A stretch of 64,000 nucleotides of DNA from Auanema rhodensis (lineage: Eukaryota; Animalia; Nematoda), in the NCBI GenBank assembly GCA_964057225.1, contig OZ059894.1, positions 11,036,001 through 11,100,000 on the forward strand. The letters are read 5' to 3'. This document shows, in pieces, positions 15,254 through 42,830 of the stretch. The position numbers and the translations under genes are program-made. The stretch's first letter is position 1, and each line of letters opens with the position of its first letter. A model generated the notes under the pieces. The model ran no database searches. It was given only the letters and a program-made list of their open reading frames with translations, and was not told where the DNA came from.

Positions 15254-15288
<35 letters not shown>

Positions 15289-21900: not shown

Positions 21901-24764
21901 TACCTCTGCGTAAAGAAGATCGACATTTAACAGCATTTACTACAACTAGTGGTACATATCAATACTGTCGAATGCCCATGGGACTCTGTGGAGCCCCACA
22001 TACATTCCAAAACGCAGTACGGTACCTACAACAACATGTACGCTGCAAACTCTTCGTATATCTAGACGATCTTCTGCTTATATCAGAATCAACCACACAA
22101 CACCTTCAAGATATCGAAGAAGTTTTGAGAGTAGCAATAGAGCTAGGATTCAAAATTAAGCTGAAGAAATGCACCTTTGGACAAAGAGAAGTCAAGTTTC
22201 TCGGATTTATAGTCGGATATGAGGGAATAAAACCGGACCCTCAGAAAATTAAAGCCATCAGAGACTACCCCAGACCAAAGTCAACAACAGGAGTCAGAGC
22301 TTTCATGGGCGTCGTTAACTACTTTCGAAGATTCATCAAAAATGCCGCGGGAATTGCCTCACCTCTCTACGACCTCACAAAAAAGGATAAAGCTTTCACA
22401 TGGGGAGACAAAGAAGAAAAATCTTTCCAACACCTGAAGAAAGCCCTTTGTCAAGCACCGGTTCTTCAGGCACCTAGAGCAAAACGACCATACGTAGTTG
22501 AAAGCGACGGAAGCATAATTGCAGTAGGAGCAGTTCTATTGCAATCTGCGGATGATCAAGAACCATTGCACCCAATAGCTTTCGCTAGCCGTAAACTAAA
22601 CAAAGCAGAAAGGAACTACCCCCCGATTGAGATCGAAGCCTTAGCCCTAACTTTCGCAGTTCATCAGTTTCGCACCTACATCTTAGGAGCACCGATCAAA
22701 ATCATAACCGATCATAGACCCTTAACTAGCCTTATGACAAGAAAAGACCTCATAGGAAGACTAGCCAAATTTCAAATAGTACTCCAAGAGTATGATATTG
22801 AAATTATCTATCGCCCAGGACGTCTTAATAGCGTTTGTGACGCATTATCAAGATACTTCGAAGACGAAATCAACGAAGCGAAGGAAAGAAAGAAGAAAAC
22901 GAAAGAATCTCCCACGCATCAAATCTCTACTATTACAACTATCACGGACCTTCGGACAATTCAAGAGGAAACAGAATGGATCATGGAAACAAAAGAAAAG
23001 ATTCAGAACAAAACAGCAGGAAGGCAACTAACAGATCGATATATAGTTCAAAATAATATTCTCTATGCAAAGCCAAAAACAGCATTCCAAACACCTCGAG
23101 CCGTTCTACCCAATGATCCAACAATTACTACAGCAATAATTGATAAGTTTCATAAGGACCCATTACTAGGAGCTCATCTAGGAATCAACAAAACACATGA
23201 CTCAATTCTACGCCGTTATACATGGACAGGAATGCAAGAAGATATCACCAACTACGTCAACAGATGTCTTCAGTGCGCAAAAAGGAAAAATAACCCGCAT
23301 GAAGCAACGGTGGAACCCATGAGAAACTTTCCCACCGTTTCACAACCTTGGGAAAGAGTTCACATGGACATTCTCGGACCACTACCACGAACACAAAACG
23401 GGAACAGATATATCTTATCAATACAGGACGCGTTCTCCAAATGGATAATAGCAACACCATTATTAAGACAAACATCAGAAGAAATCATAACAGCAATTAA
23501 GAAAAACCTGTTCTTTGTTTTCGGACCACCAAAAAGGATCATAACGGACAACGGATCCAATTTTGTTTCTCACGAATTCAAAACAATGTGCGAACAACTA
23601 GGTTCCGAGCATCATACAACTATGCCATATTACAAGAATGCAAATGGACAAGTGGAACGACTACACAGAACACTAGAAGAAGCACTAACGTCGTACGTAA
23701 ATACGGAACAGGACAATTGGGATGATATACTACCTAAGATAGTATTCACACTCAACAGGCTACCTAATGCCACAACTCGCACACCGCCCTACGATTGTAT
23801 CTTTGGTCAGGCAGCGCGACTACCAATCGACCACAACCTGGACACTCCCGCACCCACTCTCAAACCCACAGGAGATTTACATGAGAAAATATACGAAAGG
23901 ATAACAAGGAACAATGAGAAGATGAAGAAGAAATACGACGAGGCACACAAGATACAAGAACGAGAACTATACGTGGATAACAGAGCTCTCGTCAAACGGG
24001 CAAAGCCCACCAACAAACTGCAAGCAGTCAGTGATGGACCGTACCTCATAAAAGAAATAAATAAAAATAATGTCATATTAGCAGATGACGACGGGAATAG
24101 AATACGGGCTCATAAGAATAATATAAGATACTTTCCACCCGATGACAATAACATCGAGGAAAGCGAGCACGGCAGAAATGACGCGGGATCCGCTATTTAT
24201 AGCAACAGGTCCCGGCACGATCAGGTCAATACGCGCGCTCAGAACAACGGTCAAGCCACGCCCCCAATTTCTGATTCGGACAGCGATAACGAGGACGAGT
24301 TCTACGAACAAAGCCGACCTATAATAACAACTAAAGAAACAATAACACCGCAGGAAGATACGTTGGAAAGACAACAAGAAAGTTATCAATCGGAATCTGG
24401 ACTAGATACAGCAGACAAGACATCTACGAACAAAGAAGAAAACAACCAATTCCAACAATTGGTCGACAAAATTGGAGAAGAAACAAGACAAGAGCTCTAC
24501 GAAGAAAGACAAAAAGAGTTACCTACAATCAAAAGATGGAGCTCAGCTCTCAAATTGGCACTCGGTTTAGAAGACAAAAATCCGATTACTCCTCCAAAAC
24601 CGTTTCACGTACCAATAAGGTACAACAGCGTGATACCCCCTTTAAAACCTAAAAGTAGGCTTACACGCTCTCAGATACCTGATGCCCATATCAATTTACC
24701 AAACACATCGGTTGAACGAAAGAAACGACCTTCAACAGTGATAGGAGGACCAACAACTATCTAA
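15909..24764 (+). CDS. Gag-Env-protease-RT-RNaseH-integrase polyprotein
   Basis: Capsid-like Gag, R/G/D-rich NC region, internal signal peptide (LFLSVIALSLIPCQA), Cys-rich ectodomain, furin site RRQKR, Thr-rich tract, TM helix, DTGAS, YLDD, RNase H, HHCC + DD35E integrase. Confidence 0.95.
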   Translation: MADTANQNPPPGNNTQNTTNSEENTQTVEAALHRNQRKRGPPDAFRPDAKHPKTNAKSKKLPPIPGTPLTAKKLYTTAIKTTRHAISLNKNKATSSKSTPKRSSHSPKTVIDTGTNTYLPNHTSPQRPIQTENTEILTSPIPRNSPSSTDQSLHGHSLSPVSSSSDNNINLTSNVTEQRSRPQMANQMEQDNPPIARANNVSIRHHKPTLYDGSVPFNLYMQRLEGYFDALQVPIAERLSHLYLLLGTDRAAEALRTIPAEDLRQGWNHVKRLLSEKLQPPEKRDAAFTKLTHLKQGENETVQNFAQRCRNLAYESCNMDSTADERILRVSFLGGLRKTLRTHVNNRSPITFDAAVTIAETVEADEDPSLHINNLIKNVEQLEINNGLINHMRTSQQDKTHDESQTHQPRTFYGNQSRSQRPQEQWNQRRGGYRPPRYQDDRQNNRPNFRQDNRNNGYQRGYNSYRSPQRYDRYNDRYDNRRNDRYDNRGNDRHEHRGNDRYNRGNYHDRGFQQRNRSTSHGQHNRYRDRTRSPSVRFHVNKVEKETGKTRKTLPFIPLFLSVIALSLIPCQADNTYQLCIGKRGGIFLEPPRPTTCSDYAHKDGVKIKTVELFAENMNYKEWEAWKCSKEIYKACAYDLFFIRENNLTLLRIEPATPQECKTAIQERRHTDNNLNREAPGLFKTPMPTNTQSKSFWSSSCTTKSRFTLERGMMTSLHDDTIISDLFINTEGCTKQQGVCNTTNAVITWIPPNNHRNCDYTTLGKFEALINNDTVIISEIQGAFILNDDTPDPIATRCMNKNIYSTDSGTYISINELKPRRQKRKAPQEYPTRFFNITIYQSLRLTDSSTGLLPMYQTYRNRKRLDSTYNLIDYLKTSSVHIGLIKFLQLEASKLKYRLLWHNYTDINMVILHTLAEAEIRLSTEIAIEHLLPSEITAKLSKQITISDFATRLLNHKGDYLERARQIALEIAQTPTTLATGETIPSLEEYLYQLYPPRMTKLPRSRTDTQVYTQIDEIQKFLEYLAQNNRLSRISKEEREAENKKWADLTRQSNSSTITFPNYTLIFNGHAQNYGFPKTLPTARPITEEDSLLFQQTYLQLIESPGASPTTTTTTTTTTTTTTRTPATTVDPTTTTYRTPLPQFTTTPRRYHYYQSTTTPVTPPPRLLTTTPRREPPRTIPTTRITTKRATTTQPVEEIKSHTGSQAHLNFLRTRADIIQKYDDQLRQQDTRSHLQYSTSKLEEEILQAFQITKKSVCRMQNKQLLTWWAILQINPTIGIRTMLLRQDISAKFVGEHLIYVMPCTPVQITHVYSDHKRDDKCYLETPVDTEHHGKLFITPGSRDLTPYAHIIACDMATSDPYKINNQWMKDNSTLNVTHFSFSDELTSVKIDHIKFNNSNIFSNLTESTFPMALAISYGSSLASLQATLPGKLKPVFKQSGFSDLNPIGIIGGTVGTTLMLADNISNNAEKQITNFFEYVGESITAWILRTLAIIGGILVAIGLITATIWALKIYACTTRIPINQITFKEEEEEPRRENKEIELQQLQPLNKSQQNKFYSRISRYDPDALLSDNDFLAYLPRYAMKESRINYIGGSRLPFVPLSIHNQIFTALWDTGASISYMKESTFQQLPAATMVGEKTTAIVANKSRFSFLGYTRLPIVIGKTEIEHKILISANNHCPAPILLGIDFIEALSKIGINTSLRPLQNSLLVGDTIVPLAQDYSPWTENHTIAHVVSLETKQFYPGETRSLTLEVDDPASYAQAFIRSSQRIGKMTFAPTTFTPTGYGVQIFATNISPETIKIKTNQGIGTAYAIPKDIKEQKGQYVPPEARWEEQLPYFPDDFIKDLDVTNTIFTQLERQELKKIVLRNKEAFLNEDRNIGLFKGPVEHNIPIIPGKFPSFQITYRIPLTQQEEVEKQVEEMLEQGIIEPSISITTSPVILVKKKDKTYRFVTDFRALNAITLKQIYVISNIQDILDLAAGACIFTNFDLVSGFFQIPLRKEDRHLTAFTTTSGTYQYCRMPMGLCGAPHTFQNAVRYLQQHVRCKLFVYLDDLLLISESTTQHLQDIEEVLRVAIELGFKIKLKKCTFGQREVKFLGFIVGYEGIKPDPQKIKAIRDYPRPKSTTGVRAFMGVVNYFRRFIKNAAGIASPLYDLTKKDKAFTWGDKEEKSFQHLKKALCQAPVLQAPRAKRPYVVESDGSIIAVGAVLLQSADDQEPLHPIAFASRKLNKAERNYPPIEIEALALTFAVHQFRTYILGAPIKIITDHRPLTSLMTRKDLIGRLAKFQIVLQEYDIEIIYRPGRLNSVCDALSRYFEDEINEAKERKKKTKESPTHQISTITTITDLRTIQEETEWIMETKEKIQNKTAGRQLTDRYIVQNNILYAKPKTAFQTPRAVLPNDPTITTAIIDKFHKDPLLGAHLGINKTHDSILRRYTWTGMQEDITNYVNRCLQCAKRKNNPHEATVEPMRNFPTVSQPWERVHMDILGPLPRTQNGNRYILSIQDAFSKWIIATPLLRQTSEEIITAIKKNLFFVFGPPKRIITDNGSNFVSHEFKTMCEQLGSEHHTTMPYYKNANGQVERLHRTLEEALTSYVNTEQDNWDDILPKIVFTLNRLPNATTRTPPYDCIFGQAARLPIDHNLDTPAPTLKPTGDLHEKIYERITRNNEKMKKKYDEAHKIQERELYVDNRALVKRAKPTNKLQAVSDGPYLIKEINKNNVILADDDGNRIRAHKNNIRYFPPDDNNIEESEHGRNDAGSAIYSNRSRHDQVNTRAQNNGQATPPISDSDSDNEDEFYEQSRPIITTKETITPQEDTLERQQESYQSESGLDTADKTSTNKEENNQFQQLVDKIGEETRQELYEERQKELPTIKRWSSALKLALGLEDKNPITPPKPFHVPIRYNSVIPPLKPKSRLTRSQIPDAHINLPNTSVERKKRPSTVIGGPTTI

Positions 24765-24939
24765 AACAAGTTTGAAAATTCATTTTTTTTATCATAATTA
24801 CTTTATTTATACTTTTGCATCATTTTCCCATTTTTTCTCATCAAACAAACAACAATAATCAGTCATTCAAGTTTTCGAAATTTGATTTTTTTTTTGTCAT
24901 CAATCACACTATCTCTCTAAAAATTCTACCTTCTCTGTT

Positions 24940-24973
<34 letters not shown>

Positions 24974-25090
24974 TTCATCACCTGCAGTAACCTGAAAAAA
25001 AAAAAAAAAAAAAAAACCTGCTTTGCATGGAGCTATATAAGCTCAAAAACACCTCAAGCAGATAAAAAAAAATCCTCCGAATTCGACAAG

Positions 25091-25720
25091 ATGTCGCTCA
25101 ACCTTCCACCTCTACCCTGCGAGACACCCATCGAAATGATCAAGGAAAAATGGATCAACATCCATTCACTCCAAATTGAGCTACAAGAGCTGGAGAAAGA
25201 CAACCCCAAGAAACTAAAGATTCTTCGGTCCTTCTCGGAGAATCTATCCAGAGTGACTCTATTGATAGAAACTCTGGAAAGGTTACAATGTTTATGTAAC
25301 CATGAAGAAGACGAAATGGCCAAAATGGCAAAGAACTGGTTGTCAGCCACCGTCCGCACCAAGTTCACCATCCGCAAACTGCGTCAAGAATTAGGCTATT
25401 CAATCCCAGAATACGAAGACAGCGCTGATCTAATCCCGAGATGGGCCGCAGAAGAAATCTACAAGAGTTGGACAGAAGAGAGTTTAAACAAGTCCGCAAA
25501 CCAGTCCATAAGGAAAGCTGGAAAACGAGTTGGCCAAGCATTGAAGATTTTAATGGCAACTGGCGCCACCACCCAGAACCAGAAAGATATGAAAAAGAAG
25601 ATATGCAACCAGACGACAGATTTGCTGACAGATCTCAGTCTCTACCACACATGGACCGTCGCTGGGCAGCATACAGCAACCGACTTTCAAATGGGACAAA
25701 TCAATGAGGAGGAAGGATGA
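25091..25720 (+). CDS. Accessory ORF2 of the Gypsy element, 209 aa, unknown function
   Basis: Conserved in all three copies; preceded by TATATAAGCTCA at 25034-25045. Confidence 0.8.
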   Translation: MSLNLPPLPCETPIEMIKEKWINIHSLQIELQELEKDNPKKLKILRSFSENLSRVTLLIETLERLQCLCNHEEDEMAKMAKNWLSATVRTKFTIRKLRQELGYSIPEYEDSADLIPRWAAEEIYKSWTEESLNKSANQSIRKAGKRVGQALKILMATGATTQNQKDMKKKICNQTTDLLTDLSLYHTWTVAGQHTATDFQMGQINEEEG

Positions 25721-25921
25721 AAACTGCTAAGAAAGAGGTGATGAATCAATAAAACATTTTTTTTAATTTTTTTTTTTTATTTTATCTATTCACTCTATTA
25801 TTCACTTACCTATTCTATTATTCCTATTCTTGTTTCAATTTTTTTTTTTTTGTTTCAAAAAAAAACACGAAATCTAATTTCTTATAGCTGAGGTCAGCTA
25901 ACTTTTTTTTCCTATAAGGCA

Positions 25922-26307
25922 TGTTCCATACATAACTTATAGAGAAGGCGGTTGACTACGTCAACCGACTTTAGTTTAATCAAATAAAATAAGAAACTAG
26001 AATTCGAAAGCTTTTTAGAAAAGATTCCACGGAATAAGGTGGAACGTAATTCTTTTTATACAAATTCATTCACTTTTTACATTCTATAGTTTGCTATATA
26101 AACCCGTAGAAAACACACTAAGGGAGATCTTCTATCATGTAGTTTTAGACTTTAACTTTACTTGTTTGTAGTTTATAACATTTCCTATTGTAGTTTTCTC
26201 TATATAATAAAACGGTTGCTAATTTAACTACTTGTTGAACAATGAAACCCTTGCACAAAATCCATCTGAAAACCCTAGTCGGAACCCTAGGGCAATCAAA
26301 TGGAACG
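25922..26307 (+). repeat. 3' LTR
   Basis: Matches the 5' LTR. Confidence 0.95.
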
Positions 26308-26402
26308 TAATAGATACGACCACAAAGAAAACAACAGGAACAGTAACAATAACAAAAAAAATTTTTTTTTCACCTATGTGTCTAAAGGTTAGCCATGTAT
26401 CC

Positions 26403-26438
<36 letters not shown>

Positions 26439-27766
26439 ACAGTAAAAAGTCCAATCAAGAGAGAAATTTTTTCAACACATAGTTGTTTTTTTTTTAAATA
26501 TCATTGTTTTTCCTCATAACTCGGTTTAAACTCGTTCTAACCCGTTGAAATACGTCTAGAAAGTCTTTATAACATGCATATGTATGATAGAACTTCATAT
26601 TTATTGTAATAGAAAATTTTATTTTCAGACGTCTTGGTTAACAATGATATGTTTTACCCCCTTATAATTTTTATCATAATGTTCCTTATACGGAACGCTC
26701 AATGAAACTTGCTTCCAGAAAAATTTCTTTCTATTTTTTCTTCATATGTACGTAGATACTATAGAGAACTATGATAGAAAACTTTAACATTCACGAAATC
26801 ATCATTTCTCATTACGCTACGGAGGTTTAAAAAGCTGTGTTTTACCTTATAATAGACCGGAAAACCCTTGTGTTAAAACTGGACCGTTTTTACACATATA
26901 AAAATGTCCCGTATTCGGGACCCTAATGTAACTTTTGATTCCCTATATTTTTTTTCATGAAATTTACAATCTACTGTAGAAAGAAGAATTATTTTTATAA
27001 AAACTGTAAATTTTTGAAAAATGAAAACAAAACGAAAACAAAAACAACTTTTTTTTGAACATTTTCTCACACAAGGGTCCCCCCTTACCTACTTTTTTTC
27101 TCATTACTCGTTTCAACCTCATCCGATCACTCTGCAAACATGTTTAATCGTTCTAACTTGTTGAAATACGTCTTAAAAGTCTAAACAACATGCATATGCA
27201 TAATAGAAACCACCCGAATAGGCCCCCACGCACTAAACGAGATATATACATTACCAGTATAGTAATAGAACACATATTGAAGATTAATTCGATAAGAACA
27301 ATTTATTGACGTAGAGAATGTTTGTTCCGAAAAACTACAATATTAAACTATAAAAGTAACAAAAGCGTAGAGGCAGCAAAGACATGAATAAACATAAATG
27401 TAAATACAGAATTACCAGGTAGTACATAAGTATGACAAAAAATTATAAGAAAGCCATGAAAATAGAAGGTTTGTGAACAAATGAGAGGTACATCTTTGAT
27501 CGTATAGTCATTTCTAAACCGTTCGTATGCTGCAGCATCGTCATAAGCGTCACTCAAGTTGAATTTCCATGTGTACTACACGATTTTCATTCTTATTGTT
27601 ACATTCTTTCCCTGAGGGAATGGGCCGTTCCCGCCAGCAGTGCAAGAGCGGGTCGACCCGTGAGGTGGAGCTAGCAAGCCAGCATCTACCTCAAGTCTCA
27701 AAAATCGGTTAACCTTATTGTGAACCAATGGAACACATATCGAAGGTTAATTCGATAAGAACGATT

Positions 27767-28553
27767 TATTGAAGTAGATAATGTTTGTCCCGGAGGACTA
27801 CAATATTAAAATAATTACTGAAGCCCGAAGGCAGCGAGAAATAGTAAGGATACTACCTGCACTGAGTGCGTCGTATCATAAAAAAAGAGATAGCTAATGG
27901 GCAAGTTGAAGAGCTTGAAATTAACAATGACGTCACTAGAAGTAAAGTTTTCTATCTGCAGCTGCGGGTAAAGAGGGTCAGCGTAAGCAGAATTCAATTC
28001 TACCAACAATTAGTGGGAACATTGAGAGAACAGATGAAGGAGGAAATTGTAACTTCAAGTAAAATAGATTATATCTTCAGCTGCGGGTAAAGAGAGTCAG
28101 CTTTGTACAGATTACTAGTTTACATAAGAAGTGGTAACATTTCAAAAAAGGAGCACAACATAAAAAACGAGACTACGGACTATGAGGTAAATGTTATCAT
28201 TGTCTGGATCGATGAATCGGCATTTGATTGCAGCTGCGGATTGAGTGGATCAGCTTGCATGGCGTCCGCATTCGACATCAGGGAAAATGATGAGTTTCTT
28301 GAGGTCCGGCTCGGCGGGCTGTTATGTCCTATTCCCTGTTGATGGTGTTGTTGTCCTTGAGCTTGTTCTTCTTCCCAGAAAAAAAAAACTGTGAAGCTGA
28401 AGAGTCCTATTAAACGTCTTTAAACGCAAGATTAATAAGAAGCTACTACAGCTAACACAGGACCGCCTCAAGGCCTGGTAGATCAACCAGTGTTGCTTCA
28501 ATCACCAAGTATTGCGGCCTGGGCCCTTGGATCAATTCACAACACCAGTATAG
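27767..28553 (-). mobile_element. Non-coding U2-targeted element A (787 bp), putative non-autonomous retroelement
   Basis: Inserted at U2 nt ~39, flanked by U2 39-79 repeats; ends homologous to element B; no long ORF. Confidence 0.75.
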
Positions 28554-28594
28554 CAATGGAACACATATCGAAGGTTAATTCGATAAGAACGATT

Positions 28595-29458
28595 TATTGA
28601 AGTAGGAAATGTTTTGCCCCGTAGGACTACAAGTAAATATTATCTAGCACAAGGCTATTAGAGAATGATAAGATACTACCTGCACTAAGTGCGTCGCATC
28701 GTAAAGGGAAAAAAATTAAACAATGGGAGTTTAACAGCATGAAATTGAGAGAAAAGACATATCCGAGTGTGAATAAAATTACGGGTGAACGGAACATGGA
28801 GTACGAGAGACATACAAAACGAGACTAAGTGAAAAGAAAAAGTCTTGTATCACGTTCATGAAGGTTCGACGGATCCGGTAAGAAGCTGCGGGTTCAGAAG
28901 GTCAGCTTTCATCTCGTAGTCGTGGCGCATCAGGAATTTGTGAAGCTTTCCGGCTTTGCAGACGGCTGTATTGGTCCTCGTAGGATGGTGGAAGATGTTG
29001 TCGCTTAGTGATGTTACACATAAAGATATGCAAAAATAGAACAATTCAAAGAAAAAGAGCACAATTAAAACGAGATTTGGAGAGAAGAGAAGTCTTATAT
29101 CACTTTCGATGGTTCGGAAGCTCCAGTCTGCTGCTGCGGTTTAGGGGGTGCAACTGGCATGTCGGAGGCGTAGCACATCATAGGTCAAGCTTGCTGGACT
29201 CCCGGCTCGGCTGGTGGCTGTGAGTTTTCCTTGTGCTTGTTCTCGGTGGTGGTCCCTGGGCTGTCTCTTCACCAAAAATTACTATACTAATTGCACATTT
29301 CATTTAAACGACCCATTTCAGAAGCTTTAAGAGGAAAAGCTACAATTAGCATAGGACCGCCTCAAGGCCTGGTGGATCATTCAATTTAGTTTCAATCGCC
29401 AAGTATAGCGGCCTGGGCCCTTGGGTCAATTCACTGAACCAGTGTAGTATCGATTGTT
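28595..29458 (-). mobile_element. Non-coding U2-targeted element B (864 bp)
   Basis: Same junction positions as A; conserved 5' ~110-nt domain and 3' end; diverged interior. Confidence 0.75.
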
Positions 29459-29499
29459 CAATGGAACACATATCGAAGGTTAATTCGATAAGAACGATT

Positions 29500-32400
29500 A
29501 ATGGTTTATTGAATAACTAATGTTATGAAACAATAAATAACCAATAAAAAAGAGCCCAGAATCGGGGAGACGGTATTACCAGTACAACTTAAAACAGCAA
29601 GTGATTAAAAAGTACAAAATAAAACACATTACCAACAGAGGCTAAAACGACTCAAGAGTCGGGGGAGTGGGTTAAAAAAAGTAATGAATAACAAAAAAAA
29701 TGAATAATAAAGCAGAACAGTGAAAAGTAAATATCAAGTGCCGCTATGATCAAACAATTTGAGTGCCTACGGCAATGGTGTTAAAAATAAACAACAAAAT
29801 ACATGTACCAATGAAGGTCAGAAAGAGAGAAAGAAAAAAGACAAAAATAAGTAATACAAAAAGTAAAAAATATATTACAATCAAATCACAAACAAGTCAA
29901 TGGATAATTTCTTCTTCATACTGCCTTACACCAGAAACATGTTCCACGTAGATATTCCTGGCCCACTTGATGGTATCGGCGACGACGAGCTTCTCCATTA
30001 GCCGGTTGTAGTGGCTGCTGATCTTGAGTGATCGGAGGGCTTGTACGTTGAGCGGGTCCATAGTTCCAAGCATTCCTACGACATACGCTTCTACACTAGT
30101 CTTATAACCAAGACATTGGTATTGGCTGGCTATGTCAGCATATTTCCTCTCCTTTATCATACGCGCGGCTATCATGGCTTGTCGGCGGTTTTCATAGCTC
30201 ACTGTAACATCAACGATACTACAGTGTTTTGCGTCATGATCGACCACTACTATGTCAGGTCGGAGTGTACTATTAATGCCAGGAAGAGGCTGGTTAGTGT
30301 AAACTTCTCCGTTTTTAGGCTCTGGCAGGGCTTTGATAAGACGGTCCACGATGTTGTTGTGGCGGAGTTGGATTGCTCTCGTGTGAAAGTGGCAGTGTCC
30401 AAGAACATGTGCAGCAGTTTCGTTGGGGTAACTACACCTGCGGCACTGTTTGTTTCCTTCTCCGTGTCTTCTACAGCCATTGAGCTGGAGAGTATTAAGT
30501 CGAGCCTTGTGGATGAATCGCCAATCAGCAAACCGTATGAAATCTCCCTTCGCCATAAAGTGATTGGACGCTTTGTTGAGCATTGTGACATCAAAGACTT
30601 TCCCTTGATCCGGTTTTTGAAGAAGGATCCGAAGGTCTTTCAGCCATAATGCACGTCGCAGGCTTCTGTGGCATAGTGAAGGTGTTAACAGTTGGTTGTT
30701 TAGATTGAGTTCTAAACCACTTTCGAGGCATGTCCAGTTAGCGTTGATGAGTTTCTTGAGTTGACGCATCGCTACTCTTACTCTAGTCCAGATGGAGGAA
30801 ACATCAGATGTTTCGGTGTCGAAAATGCCATCAACGGAACCGTTGTAATATGCAGCTGTCTCATCGTTACTGGCTTGACGTTTAATCCTTTTTGATGCTA
30901 CTTTTATTGAGTCTTGATGCGCAATATCAGCTACTACAAGATCAGATGACTTCAAAAGTTGGTAGGCATGAGTGACTTCACAGACGTCTGACAGGTGTTG
31001 GAGTCGAGAGAGACCAAGTCCGCCGTAGTTAGTTGGCAGGTAGATTGGTTCAGCACTGGCGTTTGGAGGATAGTGCATCCATCTACGGGCACAGCGTTTG
31101 AGTTCTTTGTCAAAGGCGACTAGTTTACTCTTTGGGACGTGGCCATTCGTCATATGAAAATTAAGGCAGGGCATCAGGAAGGTGCGTACTGCGTCAGCTT
31201 TCTGCCATTCAGCCAGTAAGGATTTGTCAATTTTTTCCAAGTGTTGACTCATGATATTCACTGTTGGAACCGCAGACTTATGTAAATGCATTCCAGTAGG
31301 GATTCCCAGGTGGGAGTAGCTGTCAAATTTGCTGAGAGCGGGTAGAAAGCAGCTCTGAAGCATGTATGAGGCTGTTGATATTTTCCCTTTGTCGATCGTC
31401 AAAGTGGCGCATTTCGCTGGTTTGAAGGTCAAGCCTGTGAAATTAGCCGCATTTGATGCTGCGTCCAACATTTTCTGTAGATCTTCTGATGATGAGGAGA
31501 CCAGGGCAAGGTCATCGGCGTACGCTAGCACAGCGATGTTGTGATTGTGTAGCTTATAGCCTGTAGAGGTTTCCAAGATGGTTTTAATTAGAGGTTCAAT
31601 GGCAAGGTTGAACAGGATCGGAGATAGTGGGGATCCTTGTAACACACCTGCGTGAACTGGAATGGTCGAAGTGAGTCCGGAGCCTGTCTGGATTCTTGTA
31701 GAGGCATCTGTGTATAGAGCTCGTACTCGGGATATTGAGGCTTCAGCCATTCCTGACCATCTTAGAACGTCTAGCAGAGTTTCGTGTGGCAGCGATCCAA
31801 AAGCGTTTGCGAGATCAAGCCAAGCAATTGCAATTTTCTCACGTTTACGTTTAGCGTCTGCAATGGTACTTTGCAACAAAAAGTTGTGTTCCATGCATCC
31901 AGCTTTGGCCACAAAGCCCTTTTGGGAGGGAGAAAGTCTTTTTTCTGCTCTTGCCCATGTTAGCAGTCGATGCGTAAGACAAGCTGAGTACGTCTTACCA
32001 ATTGTGCACGAAAGTGCTATTGGTCGCCAGTTGTTAATGTCAGCTTTATCACCTTTCTTATGGATGAGGACGGTGGTCGACTCTTTCCAGGAAAAAGGGA
32101 TGTGTCCTAGCTTGTGTACGGTGTTAAATATCGCTGCTAATATGTGACCTCCTTGGTCAAATTTCTTCCAGTGCGAGTATCGAAGTCCATCAGCTCCTGG
32201 AGCCGTATCGCTGCAACGTCGTATGCGTTCCCAGACTTCCAAAGGGGTGAAAACACCTTCTAATGGGTCGGTACTAGTTGGCAAATCCGGTCTGGTGACT
32301 GTGATGGGGAGGGCTGGGCCTTGACTGCTGTGAACAGAAAGGAAGTGTTTTTCAACATCTGCAGATGGTATGGTGCAGGTTTCACTTTGTTCTCCGAGCA

Positions 32401-33227
32401 GTTGTCGAAAGGCTTTCTTCTTGTTGGCCCTCCAAAGCTTCTGGATCTTCATCGCCTGGGTTTTTTGGTCTTCCTCAGGTTGTGTGTGTGGTCGGCGCCT
32501 TTGTCGGAAGTTGGGAACTTTGATCATAATGTCAAGAGACTTTCTGATTGTGTCTACCAACTCTTCCAGGACCTGCTCGAGCTCACTTTTGCACACTACC
32601 TTTTTAATTCTATCCACCCAAATATTTTCAGAGTTTCTATTCGGATCAGGGTCGGCAAAAGATGGTTCTGTACTCGGAACCCTGATCTCGTTGAATATTT
32701 CACTCTCTCGCGGAAGGGGGGAAACTTCGGCCTCTGGGGACAAGTCCAGAATTGGGGCCTCAAACAAGCGTACCGTTGATGGAGATCCTTGTTCCTGTCC
32801 ACTGGATGATGTTTCCTCCATTGTACGCTCCTCCACGGGCGGGGTGGTCGTCCTTGTGCCTGGTGGGCGGGTGTTCCTGATCCTCCGCAATATAGGGCGG
32901 GAACTGGGCTCTCTCGGAGATAGAGGTGAGATCACCACAGTTTCCTCTATGATGCGGAGGCATCCTTCAGCTTTTTTCTGATGGCTTTTAACGGCCTTCA
33001 GATTGCTGGTGAGGCCACAGGCACGGCACTCAAATTCTACTCCGACCTCATGTTCTCTCCGAAGATGGCGGACGAGACCATTGTGGTCTGAGTAGGATCG
33101 CGGAATAGGAGCGCAGATTGAACAAGAAAAAGGGCTCTGAAGAGGCACCTTTAGCTTGTAAAGCCCTTGCTCCATCTCTAGCAGATCTAAAGACTTACGT
33201 AGTACAGTTGCAATATCGATTTAGCCA
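29500..33227 (-). mobile_element. Utopia-like (NeSL clade) site-specific non-LTR retrotransposon in U2
   Basis: 3' junction just after GTGTAGTA of U2, same orientation as U2; 52-nt 5' UTR, ~400-nt 3' UTR. Confidence 0.92.
29897..33175 (-). CDS. RT + restriction-like endonuclease protein, 1092 aa
   Basis: Two N-terminal Zn fingers, RT (APGADG, WRPIAL, QGSPLSP, YADD), CCHC knuckle, RPD..D..E..K RLE motif. Confidence 0.95.
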   Translation of the reverse strand: MEQGLYKLKVPLQSPFSCSICAPIPRSYSDHNGLVRHLRREHEVGVEFECRACGLTSNLKAVKSHQKKAEGCLRIIEETVVISPLSPREPSSRPILRRIRNTRPPGTRTTTPPVEERTMEETSSSGQEQGSPSTVRLFEAPILDLSPEAEVSPLPRESEIFNEIRVPSTEPSFADPDPNRNSENIWVDRIKKVVCKSELEQVLEELVDTIRKSLDIMIKVPNFRQRRRPHTQPEEDQKTQAMKIQKLWRANKKKAFRQLLGEQSETCTIPSADVEKHFLSVHSSQGPALPITVTRPDLPTSTDPLEGVFTPLEVWERIRRCSDTAPGADGLRYSHWKKFDQGGHILAAIFNTVHKLGHIPFSWKESTTVLIHKKGDKADINNWRPIALSCTIGKTYSACLTHRLLTWARAEKRLSPSQKGFVAKAGCMEHNFLLQSTIADAKRKREKIAIAWLDLANAFGSLPHETLLDVLRWSGMAEASISRVRALYTDASTRIQTGSGLTSTIPVHAGVLQGSPLSPILFNLAIEPLIKTILETSTGYKLHNHNIAVLAYADDLALVSSSSEDLQKMLDAASNAANFTGLTFKPAKCATLTIDKGKISTASYMLQSCFLPALSKFDSYSHLGIPTGMHLHKSAVPTVNIMSQHLEKIDKSLLAEWQKADAVRTFLMPCLNFHMTNGHVPKSKLVAFDKELKRCARRWMHYPPNASAEPIYLPTNYGGLGLSRLQHLSDVCEVTHAYQLLKSSDLVVADIAHQDSIKVASKRIKRQASNDETAAYYNGSVDGIFDTETSDVSSIWTRVRVAMRQLKKLINANWTCLESGLELNLNNQLLTPSLCHRSLRRALWLKDLRILLQKPDQGKVFDVTMLNKASNHFMAKGDFIRFADWRFIHKARLNTLQLNGCRRHGEGNKQCRRCSYPNETAAHVLGHCHFHTRAIQLRHNNIVDRLIKALPEPKNGEVYTNQPLPGINSTLRPDIVVVDHDAKHCSIVDVTVSYENRRQAMIAARMIKERKYADIASQYQCLGYKTSVEAYVVGMLGTMDPLNVQALRSLKISSHYNRLMEKLVVADTIKWARNIYVEHVSGVRQYEEEIIH

Positions 33228-33765
33228 TTAACCTTATTGTGAACCAATGGAACACATATCGAAGGTTAATTCGATAAGAACGATTACTACACTTTGATCT
33301 TAGCCAAAAGGCCGAGAAGCGATACAGCATAGCCATGAGTATCAAAGACATCAAGCAAATGTATCGTACTTGTTACGAGTGCACTCTCTCATTTGAATAT
33401 AAAAGTGTGGTTTGACAATCTTGACTGTACAGGTCATAAATGGCTCATATAAACTGTGGATTTACTCAACTTTTGGACTTATTTTTTTCTTATTCGAAGC
33501 GCTGCACTTTTTTCTATTCTTTTTATTCAAATACTTGTATATAGTTTTATATGTACGGTTGCAAAGTTTCCGAATATTTTATATATTTTTATACAATAAT
33601 TAGGAGAAGGTTAATACAATGAAATCTCCCAACTTTACAGTGTTTGTATTGCTTACAGTATCTAGAACAACCACTCTTGTAATATTAGAGCACATATCAA
33701 TCAACAACTTTTTCTAGTTATCAAAGCTTTTTTATTTCTTCAAGATATTTCAAATAAAATATAAA

Positions 33766-33884
33766 AGCTTACGACACCCGGGATTCCCAAGCCGTCTCCG
33801 ATCCAAGTACTAACCGGGCCCAACGTTGCTTGACTTGCCAGATCGGACGGGATGGCGTACTTTCAACGTGGTATGGTCGTAAGC
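33766..33884 (-). rRNA. 5S rRNA (coding region intact, upstream flank displaced by BEL element)
   Basis: Identical copy; LTR begins immediately at position -1. Confidence 0.95.
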
Positions 33885-34325
33885 TTTGGACTATGAATCC
33901 AAGAGTTATTCCAGGGGAATAGCTGTAGTATTACTCGTTCGACGTGATACAGGAGTTAATACCGTTTAGGAGTATTAACGAAGGTTGATACTCGAAGAGA
34001 ATATTATCAGGGTTGAACTTCGCAGATTTGGGTTTAAAAGGTTTATTAAATAAAGATGGTACAGTGGTAGAAAGGTTAGATTTTAAAGTGAAGGTTTCTT
34101 GGGTTTATATATGATTTAGCTTAAGGGTGATATTTGATATTTGAATAGAAAGGTCACGTTAATGTAAACTATAGAGGTGATAAAAGTTCAACATCCTTTG
34201 AGAATGTTGCGCAATAGGTTAATGATACAATTATTCGGTTAATAGATAATGGTTTAGTATTTCAGAAGAGTTATGTTTATATTGTAAATCATTATATTTT
34301 GTTAATAGTCAGGCATTTGCCGACA
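33885..34325 (-). repeat. BEL 3' LTR
   Basis: Direct repeat of 42390-42830. Confidence 0.95.
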
Positions 34326-37300
34326 TTGCCGGGCGAGGGTTGCGATTTGAATTTTTCAAACAGCAATAAGAGAGGATAGCTGGTAGAAGGAAAGGAGCGA
34401 GAAAGGAGAGGGCTGTGTATAAGATATATGAACATGCTGTGACTGCAGCTACGACGGGTACGATCCATTTCCAATTATCCTGGATCACTTCTATTAGAGG
34501 TTCCAAGTTGGGGAGATTCCAAGAGAGTCCAGATGTTCCATTATGTAGTTTGATCAGTTCTTCTGAAATTGTAGTGTCACTTATGTAGTGTAATCTGGTA
34601 CTTAGCTGGATAAATTGCTTTGTTGCTCTTCCGCATGTTAGAGTACAATTTTCTTGTACTTTGGGTTCATTGAAGTATAGTTTTATCGTTGTGGCGGGAT
34701 TTTTGTCGGAGCATCGAATTATAGTAGAAAAGGAATCGCAGTTCAGTATTGCATTTAACTCGTCCTTTGTTTCACATGTCATGTTTAGCGTTGTTCCTTC
34801 TCTGCATTTATAACATCCTGTTATCATTTGAAAATCTGAAAAACAAGGATGTCTATTAGTGTATAGACTTTCGATGCTAAATTGCGGGTTTTGCATTGTG
34901 AGCGTTGATTCTTCCATTTTTGATAGAACTGTTATAGTTCCTGCTTCTTTTGTTATCCTATAATTCGTATTAATTTTTGGAAGCTCATATTTTTTCAGTT
35001 CTCTTTGCGTCGCTGAATCGCAATTGCAAGAGAGCTGTGCTGCGGCCCCCAAACATGGGCAAGGCTTTCTTATGTGGCATGCATTAAACTTATCTGCCGC
35101 CATTCTTGCATTGCTGCATATAACAGCTGGTTTTATTTGCTCCGTTATCATGTAGTTGTTTGTCTCAGATGTTAAAAAAATTTTGTTGTACAGTTCCGTT
35201 GTTGCTTTTGCTGTGACTGACGAAATCTGTAATGATATTCCGTGAAACTCGTATTTTCGGTAGGGCTGTAGCAAAATGTCGTATTTTTGAGTGTTGTTGA
35301 GGTATATGATCGTTAATTTTGCTTGCACTTCTTGCTTCCATTGTATGCATTTGATCTCTTCGTATACTTCTTTGTTCTCTGGTTGATAAGTTGGTCTAAA
35401 TAAAATGCATCCTTCTATAGGAAGTCCACAGCTGTTGAATAGTCCTCCTCCGGCTCTGGTGCAGTAGGTTCTTCCAGGATTTTCGTATGCAGAATATAGT
35501 TCGGATACAAATGTATCCTGTCGAATATCATCGCATCCGGTGCCCCAGGGGCAATGAGTTGTACCGGCGCATCTATGAGAGGAGTGAATGGTTAGGTTAG
35601 TTATTCTAGTGAATCCTTGCGAAACTTTTTGGCATGAAAATTTATGTTGAATTAATTGAATTTCTAGTTTTCCTATAGTGGAGTTTTGATATTTGATGTA
35701 GGAGCAGAGAGAGTTTTGTAAGGGATTGAATGAAATTTCTTCGTTGGTTATTTTGGTGCAGTTTTGTATATCGTCGCAAAAGATTTCTATGTTTTTATGA
35801 GCGTTGGGGGATCCACAAGCTTGCGCCTGGCATATGAGAAAAAAGAGTGTGAATAGGAGGGAAGGGATGTACGAAATGGTGGGCTCGTTCTGTCGGCGGT
35901 ATGTTCTTAGTCTTCTGTAGATTAGACCACAGCTAATGAATAAAAGAGCGCAGCCAATTAATGGCGTAAGTACTATAAGAATAGCTAAGATTGGATTACA
36001 GTGAGGATTGCCTATGATATGTAGGATGAATGGCGGTGGGAAGTCACATGGGTGAGGAAGTTTGCATGTTTGATTCTGAGTTGACTCCAAGTTGAAGCGT
36101 GAAACGGATGCTGTTTTTGGTAAAACTGAAATAGGTAGTGGGATTATTTTGGATTGGTGTGCAGAGAGATTATGGCAGCTGGAGTCGATGCATATTGTTG
36201 AGTGGTTTGGTTGTGCTGGAAATACCACTTGTGATGTTGAACACCTGATTATCGGTTGGGTCATAGCAACTGAAAATATTTGTATTAGCATCAGAAAACG
36301 AAAAATGTTCCTTAGCCGGTTCGGATTGGTTGGTGTGTGTGAAAGATGATTGACAGTTATTTCCTGTGGTTCTCTTTCTTTGTCGAAATTGTCCTTGAGC
36401 TCGAGTGGGTAGAGTTTTTCAACTGGTTTCGTGAGTTCTTTGCCGTTTCCTAATTTAATTCTTGCGGATCTGAATATGTTATCCGAAGACGGTAGTAGGG
36501 CAGTAATGCGCGCCATTTGCCAGTTGCATCTGTTCAGGTTATCTTCTTCCACAAGGACCACCTCATTTAGCGTTGGGTGGTTAGAACTTCTGTGCGTTTG
36601 TTTTGTGGATGCGTGGGCATTACGGAGACATAGAAGATATTCCTTGGACCACCGATCCCAGAATGATTCCGCTATAATTTCCACTTTCTGCAGATTTTCA
36701 AATGCTTCTTTATTCGTTTGTATTGGGTTTGGTTCATCCAAGGCTTGTCCCAATTGTTCTACGTTACCTCCTGGTACGAGAACGGGGCTGCCGTTATTCA
36801 AGAAATCTGCTGGTGTCAGGGGTCGGTCGTCTACATTATCTGAATTTGTATAGGTGATCGGTCTGGAATTTATTATTCCTTCGATCTTTATAATTGCCGT
36901 CGTTAGTTGGTCTTTGTTGACCAATTTAAGCTGCAATGATTTGTAGAGCGAAGTTTTTACTATCGCAACCAGTCGCTCCCATACTCCTCCAGTCCATGGG
37001 GCACTGGGAGTGTTAAAAATCCATGTAATGTGGTGTTTTTGTAAAAATTTTGTGAAACTTGTTCTATGTTCACTATCATAAGTTTCTAACATGTTAAGTA
37101 TCTTAGCCGAGTGAACAAAATTGCTCCCATTGTCCGAACGGATAACGTCCGGTAATCCTCTGCGAGCTACGAATCTTATAAATGCATTGAGGAATGTATT
37201 AGAGGTCATGTCGTTAATTGGTTCGAGGTGAACTGCTCGAACCGTTAGACATGTAAAGATTACTATATATATTTGTTCACTTTTTCTATATTTAATGGGT

Positions 37301-40300
37301 CCGATACAGTCTAGCCCCGTATGCTTAAATGGCATAGCTTTTGTAATTCGATCTTCTGGCAGAGGTGCCAGAAAATCTGTGGTGAATGGGCGACTGAGTA
37401 TTTTTTGACACGGGACGCACTTTTTTATAATTGATTTGCATACCTGCCTTGTTCCTGCCATGAAGAACTTTTGAAGAAATAGGCTGATCAGATGTGTAGT
37501 TCCCAGGTGTGCATTTTCTTTATGTATGGAAAGCAAAATTAGTTTACCTAAATCAGATTTTTTGGGTAGTAAAAAGGGGTACTTTGTGGATGCAGGCAAT
37601 TTGGCGTTAAGCAAACGTGTTTGAATTATACGTAATCCGTTGTTATCCTTGGTGGTGCGAAATTGCTTTATTTCCGATTGTTTTAATTTTTTCTGGGCCT
37701 CTTGTATAAGAAAGAGATCTGCGGTTTGGGATTGCTGCTTTTCCTTTTGCGCTCGTTGTAGCATGGTTGATGTTGGGGTTTTGTTTATTTTCTGCAATAG
37801 TACTAGCGCGGCTTTAAATACCAAACCTGTGGTCCGTTGTAGTTTGGAGTACGAATTAAATCTTCCTGGTTGTATTATTGACTCGTATGATTGAATATCA
37901 GTAGATACGGGTAGAATGAGCATGGGGGGTTCGTCTTCGTCTATTGGAGCGGTGAGTTCCTTTATTGGTCTGTTGTCCATTTGTGATAGCCATGGTGGAG
38001 AAAACAACCAGCGTTCCTTTAACAGATTTTGGTCTGTTGTCCCTCTAGTTCCAATGTCTGCTGGATTATGGTCAGTATCAACATAGTGGAAGTGTAGTGA
38101 AGCTTTTTGAGCTTCCAACCTTCTTCCTATTTCTTCAATGTTTTGCCGCATATTACTGATAAAAACGGGGACACTTTTTTTCGTTATAAGCCAAGATAGA
38201 GCTATTTGGCTATCTGACGCAATGTTAATTGCCAGATTCGGCTCGTTCAAATTATTGTATATTGTTTCCGCGATTTTCATTCCCATAAAAATTGCGGATA
38301 GTTCTAAGCGCGGGATGGTCAAAGTCCTATTTTTGGGGGCTAATTTTACTTTCCCCATTATGATTGGAGCTCTTTCTGTGCTGGTAGTTAAATAGGCGCA
38401 TGCTGCAATAGCTTTTGTGCTTGCGTCTACAAAAACCCACAGTTCTTTCTTGTCTCTTTTGCTAGATAATTCCCGCGGAACTTCAATGTTGAACGGCCCT
38501 ATCTTTGTGCTGGCTTTGTTCCAATCGGCGACGAGATCCTCGGGGACTTGCTCCTTCCAATCGACATTGCTGTTCATTACTTGTCTTAAAATAATTTTAT
38601 ATGGAAGTAGGAGCGGTGCCGCTAGTCCTATGGGGTCATATATGCTGTGTAAACTACTCAGCATATCTCGTTTAGTAAAAGACTGTTGCATACGCATTTG
38701 TCCTGTTAATACAAACGAATCTTTACCGGCGTTATATAGCACACCTAGTATTTTGGGATTTTTATCTGGGTGGTGATCTATCGCCGGAATTTCGTTGTTA
38801 AAATGGGATGAGTTACTAAAGTATTCTCTAACATTCATCGAAATTTGAGAGAATATTTTCTTTGAATCTTTATATAAATCGGTTAGTTCTTTTTGATCAT
38901 TGGTTATATAAAAAATATTATCTACATAAAGATATCTTAGGGTTTTTTCTACAAATGGTGAGGTGTGGCTATTCAAATACGCGTGTAACGACATGTTTAA
39001 TACAGCGGGGCTTGCCGTAATGCCAAAAGCTAACCTATTAAATCGAAATTCTATTATATTGTTTGGTGTAGGCGGCTTATTGACATCTTTCAACCAAAGA
39101 AAGCGACAGAGATCTTTACAATCATTAGCTATGCGTATTTGTGTGAAAGCACCTTCAATATCACACATCAGAAAATACGATTTGGTACGAATACCTATCA
39201 AGATATCGAGAATTTTGTTGGTGAAGCTCTCACCTGTTGAGGTTATGTCATTTAGAGAGAGTTGTCCTTTTTGTTTAGCAGATGCGTTAAAGACTATGCG
39301 AAGAGGCTTGGTTTTTTGGGGTTTCCACACACCGCGATGTGGCATATAATAAGTTCTGGTCGCCTCAACATCTGCCGGGACTAACTCTATTACGTTTTCT
39401 TTTAAATATTGTGAGAACGTTTCTTGATAGTATTTTTGCTGATTGGGGTCTTTTTGTAAGGATATTTGAAGACGATTAAGTGTTGCCAAAGCAAGATTAC
39501 GGTTAGATTGAATATTTATGGCGTTTTTCTTTAGTGGGAGAGGGGCGGTTATGTAGCCGTTATCAAACGTAAGTAAAGTAGAATATTCGTTATAGAATAG
39601 TTCTGATTTGTTCAAAGCTCCTTCATGTGGAGCAATGCCCAAACTATCTATTTCGAATAATTGTTTAATCATAACTTCCTCCGGTATTTGAGGGTTTATG
39701 ATTAAGGAATGGACGGCTATGGATTCATGGGTATTATTTGTTTTTCCATAAATACAGGGACCAAAGTGGGTGTGTTTAATTTTTAGACCCGATGGTAATG
39801 AAATGGATGGCTCTTCAGTTATTACTGAATCATACCAATCCATACCTAACAAAATGTCGGGTGAGAATGTTTCCCCATTAATGAATTGATTGGTGACGGA
39901 AATTTTGGTTTTTTCAAGAAATTCTCTATCCCGGATTTGTAGAGAACAGCATTTTAGGTTTCCGGTGAGTGGTTTTGGGGATGTTAGCAAAATTAGTTTA
40001 ATTATTTTTCCATATGGGGTTTGCAAAATAGCTTCGACTGTTTTTGTTTCAAAAGTTTCTTTATTGCCCGAAAATCCGGTTGCTGTAATGTTTTGTGTTG
40101 CTAAGGTATTCAAGTTGCATGTCTCAGCTGTTTTTTGATGGATGAAGCTTTGAGTTGCTCCGGGGTCAAGAAATATGGTTTTAGTATGATAAGTGTTTGT
40201 TAAAGGATTTAAGAGAGAGATTTGAGAAGTCATGAGGTAAGCGGGAGAAGGATGGAAAGATTTAGATATAGTGGTGCAATTCATGGACGGTTTAGTAATT

Positions 40301-41526: not shown

Positions 41527-42425
41527 TGCTACCGTTTTTTGATTTTTTGATGCAAAATGTATGACTTTTGAATTTCTTAGTTGAATTGTTGCAAAATGTG
41601 TTGGTAACTTTTTTGATATTGAGATTGAGATAGAGATAGAGATTCAGATGAGATGAGATGAAGCAAAGAAGTTTAAAGAATGTGATGATGAAGAAAAGTA
41701 AACAAAGGAACTGAGAAATAAAAAGTGAGAATAGAAAATAATACAAAAAGGTTTCTAACAATTGATACCTGATTTGGACGATGCACCAATTTGGACTATG
41801 AATCCAAGAGTTATTCCAGGGGAATCTGTTTTGGTTTCTAGTTCCAAAATCAGGATGTTCGCTCTTGTTACTGTGTCAGCATGAAGCGTGGTTACCTCGT
41901 TTATTCTTCTGTTCAATTCAGAAAACGTAGGTTCGGGGAGAAGAGAAGCAAGAGTAGCGAGAGATGATTCTTCAGACCTAAGTTGTGTGAGAGATGTGTG
42001 TAGGCGTAGAAGCGAAATGTTTTCTTGGTTCTCAGTTTTAGTTTTTATGAGTAGTTTGGCTAGTTGCTCAAATTTGTCTGCGAAATTGTGAAGTTTTTCA
42101 TTGAAAACTTCTTCAGTACGGTCCATTGCTACCGTTTTTTGATTTTTTGATGCAAAATGTATGACTTTTGAATTTCTTAGTTGAATTGTTGCAAAATGTG
42201 TTGGTAACTTTTTTGATATTGAGATTGAGATAGAGATAGAGATTCAGATGAGATGAGATGAAGCAAAGAAGTTTAAAGAATGTGATGATGAAGAAAAGTA
42301 AACAAAGGAACTGAGAAATAAAAAGTGAGAATAGAAAATAATACAAAAAGGTTTCTAACAATTGATACCTGATTTGGACGATGCACCAATTTGGACTATG
42401 AATCCAAGAGTTATTCCAGGGGAAT
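41226..42425. repeat. 600-bp tandem duplication (LTR end, PBS, leader, first 100 gag codons)
   Basis: 41226-41825 repeated at 41826-42425. Confidence 0.93.
42371..42388 (-). promoter_or_regulatory. BEL primer binding site (tRNA-Gly-like); second copy at 41771-41788
   Basis: TGGTGCATCG 1 nt after the LTR. Confidence 0.75.
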
Positions 42426-42830
42426 AGCTGTAGTATTACTCGTTCGACGTGATACAGGAGTTAATACCGTTTAGGAGTATTAACGAAGGTTGATACTCGA
42501 AGAGAATATTATCAGGGTTGAACTTCGCAGATTTGGGTTTAAAAGGTTTATTAAATAAAGATGGTACAGTGGTAGAAAGGTTAGATTTTAAAGTGAAGGT
42601 TTCTTGGGTTTATATATGATTTAGCTTAAGGGTGATATTTGATATTTGAATAGAAAGGTCACGTTAATGTAAACTATAGAGGTGATAAAAGTTCAACATC
42701 CTTTGAGAATGTTGCGCAATAGGTTAATGATACAATTATTCGGTTAATAGATAATGGTTTAGTATTTCAGAAGAGTTATGTTTATATTGTAAATCATTAT
42801 ATTTTGTTAATAGTCAGGCATTTGCCGACA
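42390..42830 (-). repeat. BEL 5' LTR
   Basis: TGTCGGC...GTCCAAA on the minus strand. Confidence 0.95.

Follow-up and report, generated by a model that had tools for sequence, protein, structure and literature searches.

Two non-coding elements at the Utopia target site of an interrupted U2 snRNA gene in the nematode Auanema rhodensis

The 64,000-nucleotide stretch of the Auanema rhodensis genome analyzed here (contig OZ059894.1, positions 11,036,001 to 11,100,000; called the window below and numbered from its first letter) is a tandem array of U2 small nuclear RNA (snRNA) and 5S ribosomal RNA (rRNA) genes, all encoded on the minus strand. One of its U2 genes is interrupted by a reverse transcriptase (RT) element and by two non-coding elements, A and B, and the nature of A and B is the subject of this report. 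Rfam models run over the window identified five intact U2 genes, 13 5S genes, and three partial U2 matches. The canonical unit of the array (5472-7948) is repeated with 99-100% identity and contains one or two 5S genes, and several large insertions interrupt the array.

The intact U2 copy at 5472-5661 (minus strand) was taken as the U2 reference and compared with the whole window by BLAST. Read along the minus strand, the interrupted gene had the order U2 nt 1-96, a 3727-bp RT element, U2 nt 38/39-79, B, U2 nt 39-79, A, and U2 nt 39-190, and each of these U2 pieces was 100% identical to the intact copy. The same order had been drawn in an earlier note on this DNA, made from the letters alone, and the BLAST comparison reproduced it to the exact base. 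The features of the interrupted gene are as follows:

33228-33323, minus strand: U2 snRNA gene nt 1-96, the 5' part (BLAST 100%; Rfam U2 84 bits)
29501-33227, minus strand: Utopia-type element, 3727 bp (open reading frame list, Pfam, motifs, U2 junction)
29459-29500, minus strand: U2 nt 38/39-79 between the Utopia-type element and B (100% to U2 nt 38-79)
28595-29458, minus strand: element B, 864 bp, non-coding (BLAST, alignment with A)
28554-28594, minus strand: U2 nt 39-79 between B and A (100% over 41 nt)
27767-28553, minus strand: element A, 787 bp, non-coding (BLAST, alignment with B)
27615-27766, minus strand: U2 nt 39-190, the 3' part, followed by the normal downstream spacer (100% over 152 nt)

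The upstream region (33228-33884) was 100% identical to positions 95-751 of the canonical unit, so the U2 promoter of the interrupted gene is presumably intact. The downstream flank (26308-27614) matched the canonical unit at 99.1%.

The RT element consisted of a 52-nt 5' untranslated region (UTR), an intact open reading frame (ORF) of 1092 amino acids (aa) at 33175-29897 (minus strand), and a 3' UTR of ~396 nt ending in ...TTCAATAAACCAT. The Pfam domain RVT_1 was found at residues 371-593 of the protein (E = 5e-28), and direct reading of the translation revealed two N-terminal C2H2 fingers, a C-terminal CCHC motif (CRRC..H..C), and a nuclease motif of the PD-(D/E)xK type (RPD..D..E..K). This is the layout of the Utopia proteins, which have an N-terminal zinc finger, a central RT, and a C-terminal zinc finger with a restriction-like endonuclease (RLE). 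Utopia elements are U2 snRNA gene-specific RLE retrotransposons without long terminal repeats (LTRs) and belong to the NeSL clade; at their published site the 3' flank starts from U2 nt 39 (Kojima & Jurka 2015, PMC4640811). The 3' junction of the element was likewise at U2 nt 38/39, and in both of the copies in the window (junctions 29501/29500 and 44709/44708) it was followed by U2 at 100%. Disrupted U2 genes within arrays are another trait shared with the published elements, of which stacked insertions are known in Nasonia and which occur in nematodes (PMC4640811). The target duplication was longer here: U2 39-96 is present on both sides of the element (~58 bp), whereas reported Utopia 5' junctions range from no duplication in arthropods to 20-bp duplications in reptiles (PMC4640811).

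The best protein match to the RT protein had 56% identity, and the nearest RT homologues were from taxa listed as Utopia hosts: Dendroctonus, Daphnia, and turtles, the last as a group, since the genera differ from those listed. Two homologues with 43-46% identity were also joined to U2 at the same site. In a soil-metagenome contig (L042) the element ends in ...AATAAAATTAA and is followed by ATCTGTTCTTATCAG, while in a scorpion contig (L039) the element is preceded by U2 up to ~nt 57, which makes the duplication ~20 bp long. The contigs of two soil-metagenome relatives with 55-56% RT identity (L001 and L002) stop short of the U2 flanks. By its predicted protein layout, its 3' junction at U2 nt 38/39, and its U2-joined homologues, the RT element is a Utopia-type U2-site retrotransposon, and the link to the Utopia target that had been drawn in the earlier note was supported. 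One further copy was found in another U2 gene:

44556-44900, minus strand: second Utopia insertion, 5'-truncated (BLAST)

In this copy, a T-run precedes the final 178 bp of the element (44709-44886, 97% identity), which are joined to U2 38-190 (44556-44708); of the U2 sequence upstream only nt 1-2 are left, with nt 3-37 missing. Because its ORF is intact and the second copy is 97% identical, the resident Utopia appears to be young and is probably active.

A and B showed no sign of protein coding. The longest ATG-initiated ORF in the sense direction was 32 aa in A and 56 aa in B (38 and 70 aa on the opposite strand), the sense frames contained 11-18 stops each, and a tblastn search for RT remnants with 121 related RT proteins found nothing below E = 0.06 in either element. 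One frame of 33 codons is open in the 5' domains of both elements. It was considered as a protein and rejected: it has no ATG to start from and differs between A and B at 10 of 33 residues, so it is not selected as a protein, and an 11-nt insert in B cuts it off from upstream sequence.

Alignment of A with B gave an uneven pattern of conservation. A 108-nt block at the 5' end (A 28553-28446, B 29447-29340, minus strand) was 83% identical by BLAST and 82% identical in 50-column steps of the end-to-end alignment. The interiors were 32-60% identical in the same steps, one block near the 3' end was 74% identical, and the last 32 columns were 84% identical. Within the interiors, three decayed modules were recognized in A and two in B, with the core GCUGAYC...ACCCGCAGCUG. 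As the conserved blocks do not follow distance from the U2 repeats in a monotonic way, the pattern speaks for constraint and against gene conversion that spreads outward from the repeats. B also has 11 extra nt between U2 nt 79 and the start of the sequence it shares with A, which is typical of 5' joins made by target-primed reverse transcription (TPRT). The earlier statements that A and B encode no protein, that they share their junctions, a 5' domain, and a 3' end, and that their interiors have diverged all agree with these results.

Two observations on sequence composition can be set beside this architecture. A and B contain multiple internal T-runs, and one of these lies just past the conserved domain in each element, ~170-185 nt from the 5' end (T10 at 28370-28385 in A; AAUUUUUGG, which is Sm-site-like, at 29275-29285 in B). 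In the soil-metagenome relative with 55% identity, a long upstream region (L001 1-1560) contains two ~300-bp internal repeats ending in TTTGCAGC(A/G)GCTG. These recall monomeric 5' UTR repeats and the CAGCTG-containing modules in A and B; no alignable homology was found.

A third form of the same arrangement was found in the ordinary spacer. Approximately 265 bp downstream of each U2 gene there is a relic consisting of an A-like tail of ~80 nt, a degenerate copy of U2 39-79, and CTATACTGGT, the sequence with which A begins at its 5' end. The relic was matched by nhmmer in each unit at E = 3e-4, and its piece of U2 39-79 has undergone five transitions. The relics were located at:

27249-27385, minus strand: relic downstream of the interrupted gene, with the A-like tail to 27304, U2 39-79 at 27303-27263, and CTATACTGGT at 27262-27249
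near 579-650, 3046-3120, 5161-5235, 7638-7710, 13061-13135, and 44245-44318, minus strand: other relics (BLAST, local alignment, direct reading)

Since the relic is in every unit, the order of tail, U2 39-79, and head is older than the last homogenization of the array, and the A/B family is therefore an old one in this array, with at least four recognizable members. The spacer of the array is therefore built in part from old A/B-family insertions. The ordinary spacer was also searched for an A-like body over the ~230 nt that come first after U2; the similarity was not significant, and this candidate was dropped.

The relic is also where a different history of A and B has to be considered, one in which they are immobile and arose when U2 39-79 and a spacer-like block were duplicated by unequal crossing-over or slippage, their termini being kept alike by gene conversion. 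The array does evolve by unequal exchange, as its near-identical units with one or two 5S genes attest, the order of tail, U2 39-79, and 5' start is present in ordinary spacer, and everything lies at one locus. However, the interiors of A and B are so diverged while the U2 fragments around them are identical at 41 of 41 positions, and this identity is informative given that the U2 piece of the relic has decayed. With 40-70% difference inside the elements and none in their U2 flanks, separate and relatively recent insertions fit better than an old local duplication. The diverged blocks lie between conserved ones with no fading with distance, the 11-nt indel falls exactly at the B junction, the 3' junction is the Utopia nick site to the base, and the tail is homologous to a retrotransposon tail (see below). 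Duplication of DNA alone is on this evidence a rather improbable source of A and B. A DNA transposon of the Dada type was also rejected, as A and B are without terminal inverted repeats and their 41-bp duplication is far above the 6-7 bp of Dada.

The earlier note had held that only TTCAATAAA is shared between the 3' ends of A and B and that of the neighboring element, and here the result was different, with a likeness extending over ~40 nt. When the last 48 nt of A and of B were aligned with the last 40 nt of Utopia, anchored at the shared AATAAA, the scores were 31 and 28.5; shuffled sequences averaged 8.3 and 5.6 (sd ~4.4), and not one of the 2000 scored as well. When the A tail was compared with every 45-nt stretch on both strands of the window, only one unrelated locus equaled the score of the Utopia tail, setting aside the members of the family and the two Utopia tails. 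The common module consists of TATTGT, an apical loop, AACATTA, a few bases, TA, and then TTCAATAAA. The apical part is a short loop in Utopia and an extended stem with a UNCG tetraloop in A (GUCC[UCCG]GGAC, ~27812-27767), B (GUCC[UACG]GGGC, ~28642-28595), and the relic (GUUU[UUCG]GAAC). Among the three cUNCGg hairpins there were one compensatory and two one-sided changes. The comparison with shuffles shows the terminal ~40 nt of A and B to be homologous, at the level of sequence, to the tail of Utopia.

Beyond the tail, no similarity between A or B and Utopia was found except for one exact match of 16 nt in the same orientation, between positions 250-266 of A (28288-28303) and positions 2467-2483 of the Utopia ORF (30745-30760). 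Approximately 7e-4 such matches are expected by chance, and B lacks the match, which is due either to chance or to a common origin. It counts in favor of a rival reading, in which A and B are the dead, internally rearranged remains of another autonomous Utopia lineage located outside the window, either deletion derivatives or decayed copies. Several Utopia lineages are able to coexist in one U2 array (PMC4640811), and the short internally deleted elements (SIDEs) of R2 originated in this way (PMC3414825). Such remains would also have the target and the Utopia-like tail that A and B have. Against such an origin, there is no remnant of an RT, zinc finger, or RLE protein in A or B (best tblastn E = 0.06), and the interiors are repeated modules, not ORF debris. 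A, B, and the relic also keep one non-coding architecture and the same junctions despite deep divergence, and this common architecture points to propagation in the non-coding state. Descent from another autonomous lineage is thus unlikely, though it deserves real weight.

The evidence as a whole suggests that A and B are probably two diverged representatives of one non-autonomous, non-coding retroelement family, whose members would insert at U2 38/39 by TPRT carried out in trans by a Utopia-type enzyme. Both are non-coding and sit at the very nucleotide targeted by the autonomous partner. A stringent RLE reverse transcriptase that recognizes the 3' end of its RNA would need just this combination, an identical nick site and a homologous tail, and for this reason A and B are best read as passengers of Utopia-type elements. 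A U2-specific non-autonomous family had already been proposed in the earlier note, and part of that proposal stands on the common U2 38/39 site, the absence of coding sequence, the apparently independent insertions, and the likeness of the tails; its description of the elements as structured does not. The folding energies were ordinary, and only local hairpins and block conservation were seen, so that the term is justified for the 3' hairpin only.

We infer that A and B would have been mobilized by a Utopia-type enzyme, that they would have used the U2 promoter, and that their 41-bp duplications would have arisen at insertion by one of two routes. The RNA of A and B would be part of a longer transcript, of which the intact upstream U2 promoter is the likeliest source; RNA polymerase III (Pol III) is disfavored as a source because of the many internal T-runs. 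The Utopia protein would recognize the 3' hairpin and the ..AACAUUA..UUCAAUAAA tail and nick the bottom strand at U2 38/39. In the first route the top strand would be cut 41 nt downstream of the bottom-strand nick, resulting in the long target-site duplication. Utopia (39-96) would have entered the intact gene first, and A and B would have inserted later at sites made up of a tail and U2 39, in which case recognition would rest on the downstream U2 sequence. In the second route the RNA would begin at the U2 start, the cDNA would carry a leader of U2 1-79 (or 1-96), and the 5' join would be made by annealing to the upstream target. Each newcomer would take the intact site nearest the 5' end, with A first, B second, and Utopia last, and nt 79 and nt 96 would be inherited markers of their lineages. 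A comparable join by homology, giving uniform 5' junctions, was proposed for R2 RNAs that keep upstream 28S sequence (PMC3774820). The two routes cannot be separated from this one locus. Either would remake a usable target, allowing successive insertions to stack, and the appearance of a repeat-spacer-like array that grows, described in the earlier note, is no more than repeated insertion with a long target duplication would be expected to leave behind, and not a system in itself.

The conserved 5' domain of 108 nt most likely works as a cis-acting RNA, which could serve in 5' processing or as a protein-binding "5' RNA" of the R2 kind. An RNAalifold prediction gave it a rod-like fold in which the positions that differ between A and B are placed in loops (with two sequences only, covariation is uninformative), and an alternative pseudoknot can be drawn by eye. 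Two known ribozymes were considered for it: manual threading onto the helix order of the hepatitis delta virus (HDV)-like ribozyme failed, although pseudoknotted ribozymes are easily missed, and the core motifs of a hammerhead were imperfect.

Several results weigh against the view that A and B are Utopia passengers. Their likeness to the Utopia tail is short, and no significant likeness was found between the 5' ends of A and B and that of Utopia, for which 215 and 1568 of 2000 shuffles scored as well; the same comparison agrees with the earlier claim that A and B are not deletion derivatives of their neighbor, as neither has the make-up of an internally deleted Utopia copy. The 5' junctions differ, at nt 79 in A, B, and the relic and at nt 96 in Utopia, which is unexpected for one enzyme with a fixed staggered cut. 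For the tails and for the 5' domain, taken at 108 or 134 nt, the minimum free energies gave z-scores from +0.5 to -1.8, no better than shuffles. In Rfam, only U2 and 5S were matched over 27000-34000 at E <= 10, and no known self-cleaving ribozyme was found there for the 5' domain. A covariance model recovered A and B but no other copy in the window, six related loci gave it no match, and an exact 19-mer from the 5' domain had 36 matches in JGI metagenome contigs, all of them attributable to chance (35 in GC-rich contigs of 56-75% G+C, presumably bacterial, and one, L028 with 37% G+C, in a tyrosine-recombinase gene). The known set is two copies and the relics, all in one array. A separate comparison of the 5' ends of A, B, or Utopia with the U2 sequence downstream of the junctions also gave nothing significant.

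A conserved RNA domain could also belong to the host, with A and B functioning as non-coding RNA genes or regulatory modules within a disrupted U2 gene. Strong conservation of the 108-nt block would be expected in this case, and the T-run past the conserved domain in both elements could end a Pol III transcript. However, no Rfam family was matched at the threshold given above and no tRNA-like head was found by ARAGORN, the place, junctions, and tail are of the retroelement type, and A and B are too diverged for a homogenized gene family. A host function for A and B is therefore highly improbable.

The difference between the junctions at nt 79 and nt 96 may, speculatively, mean that the partner of A and B is a Utopia lineage different from the resident one, or that the 5' domain of A and B influences second-strand cleavage. 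A bolder version of the passenger hypothesis, which seems unlikely at present, is that A and B are long-lived RNA-only parasites of U2 arrays, with a new cis-acting 5' RNA, a tail that mimics the Utopia hairpin, and relics that are recruited into the spacer. The 5' domain of such parasites would be either a new self-cleaving motif or a "5' RNA" that places the Utopia protein for a cut 41 nt downstream, and positioning of the latter kind would explain why A, B, and the relic are joined at nt 79 and the autonomous element at nt 96.

The large insertions elsewhere in the array carry LTR-retrotransposon polyproteins, part of them with viral fusion-glycoprotein domains according to a Pfam scan. One homology search was made with the pol fragment of one LTR insertion, and the closest proteins were from Caenorhabditis, Auanema, Meloidogyne, and Panagrolaimus, with 39-64% identity. 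The five large insertions (14534-26307, 33885-42830, 45514-57245, 57621-64000, and 9238-12179) are each found at a distance of 0-180 bp on the upstream side of a 5S gene. One directly adjoins the 5' end of its 5S gene (33766-33884), three are at 50-61 bp, and one is at 178 bp. The four that have both ends inside the window have target duplications of 4-5 bp. From these positions, it looks as if nematode LTR elements target Pol III genes in the manner of Ty3/Ty1.

Three giant uninterrupted ORFs were present in these insertions, at 15909-24764 (plus strand, 2951 aa), 34309-41526 (minus strand, 2405 aa), and 46930-55770 (minus strand, 2946 aa), in which the Pfam scan found gag, protease, RT, and integrase fused with viral fusion-glycoprotein domains. 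A Ty3-like element has a fusion domain of the gB/Monjiviricetes type between gag and protease, which is an unusual order, and a Bel/Pao-like element has a phlebovirus G2 domain after the integrase. Within the Bel/Pao-type insertion, ARAGORN made a tRNA-His-like call at 41768-41855 (plus strand), which may be spurious or have to do with primer binding. The insertion at 9238-12179 is 2.9 kb long and lies in the spacer. It encodes a BED zinc finger in a 232-aa ORF (9585-10283), and the unit sequences on its two sides overlap by 4 bp.

A and B are most likely previously undescribed hitchhikers of Utopia. The paper that defined Utopia (PMC4640811) describes no non-coding partner element and does not use the terms "non-autonomous" or "nonautonomous", and in the searched literature, where the other candidates were judged by title and abstract, there was no paper on a non-autonomous partner of Utopia at the U2 site; within these bounds, the earlier suggestion that the family is apparently undescribed was borne out. 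The practical interest of such a family is that R2-like site-specific RLE retrotransposons are under development as tools for gene insertion, for which minimal RNA features matter. A natural non-coding passenger of Utopia would define a minimal 3' recognition module, a hairpin and ~20 nt, and A and B also offer a candidate 5' RNA domain. They would also illustrate the stacking of insertions that a long target duplication makes possible in a small multigene family, and they show that the spacer of an snRNA/5S array can consist in part of the relics of such elements.

Compared with Utopia itself, A and B share the site and the tail and lack the ORF. The closest precedent for non-coding passengers is provided by the SIDEs of R2 (Eickbush & Eickbush 2012, PMC3414825). 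Like A and B, these are non-coding and are found at the gene site (rRNA in one case, snRNA in the other) of a site-specific RLE element, and the two also resemble each other in having a cis-acting 3' end for TPRT, a conserved 5' RNA domain, and co-transcription with the host gene, although for A and B these roles are predicted ones. SIDEs clearly derive from the resident R2 by internal deletion and have its HDV-like ribozyme, whereas A and B share with the resident Utopia a tail of only ~40 nt, have a 5' domain that is unrelated to it and matches no known ribozyme, and have interiors of repeated modules.

Short interspersed nuclear elements (SINEs), including SINEU with its snRNA-derived heads (Kojima 2015, PMC4494074), are likewise non-autonomous, composite retroposons with a head, a body, and a tail copied from a partner long interspersed nuclear element (LINE), and SINEU is also associated with snRNA. 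A and B have the tail in common with the partner LINE but not a Pol III-derived head: theirs contains no recognizable tRNA, 7SL, 5S, or snRNA, and the internal T-runs exclude Pol III transcription of the whole of A or B. They are also site-specific rather than dispersed, as far as has been seen, and unlike in SINEU the U2 sequence at A and B is a flanking duplication and not clearly part of the element. A and B do not represent a new kind of mobile element or system; they would be a modest extension of the SIDE- and SINE-like passengers that accompany site-specific RLE elements.

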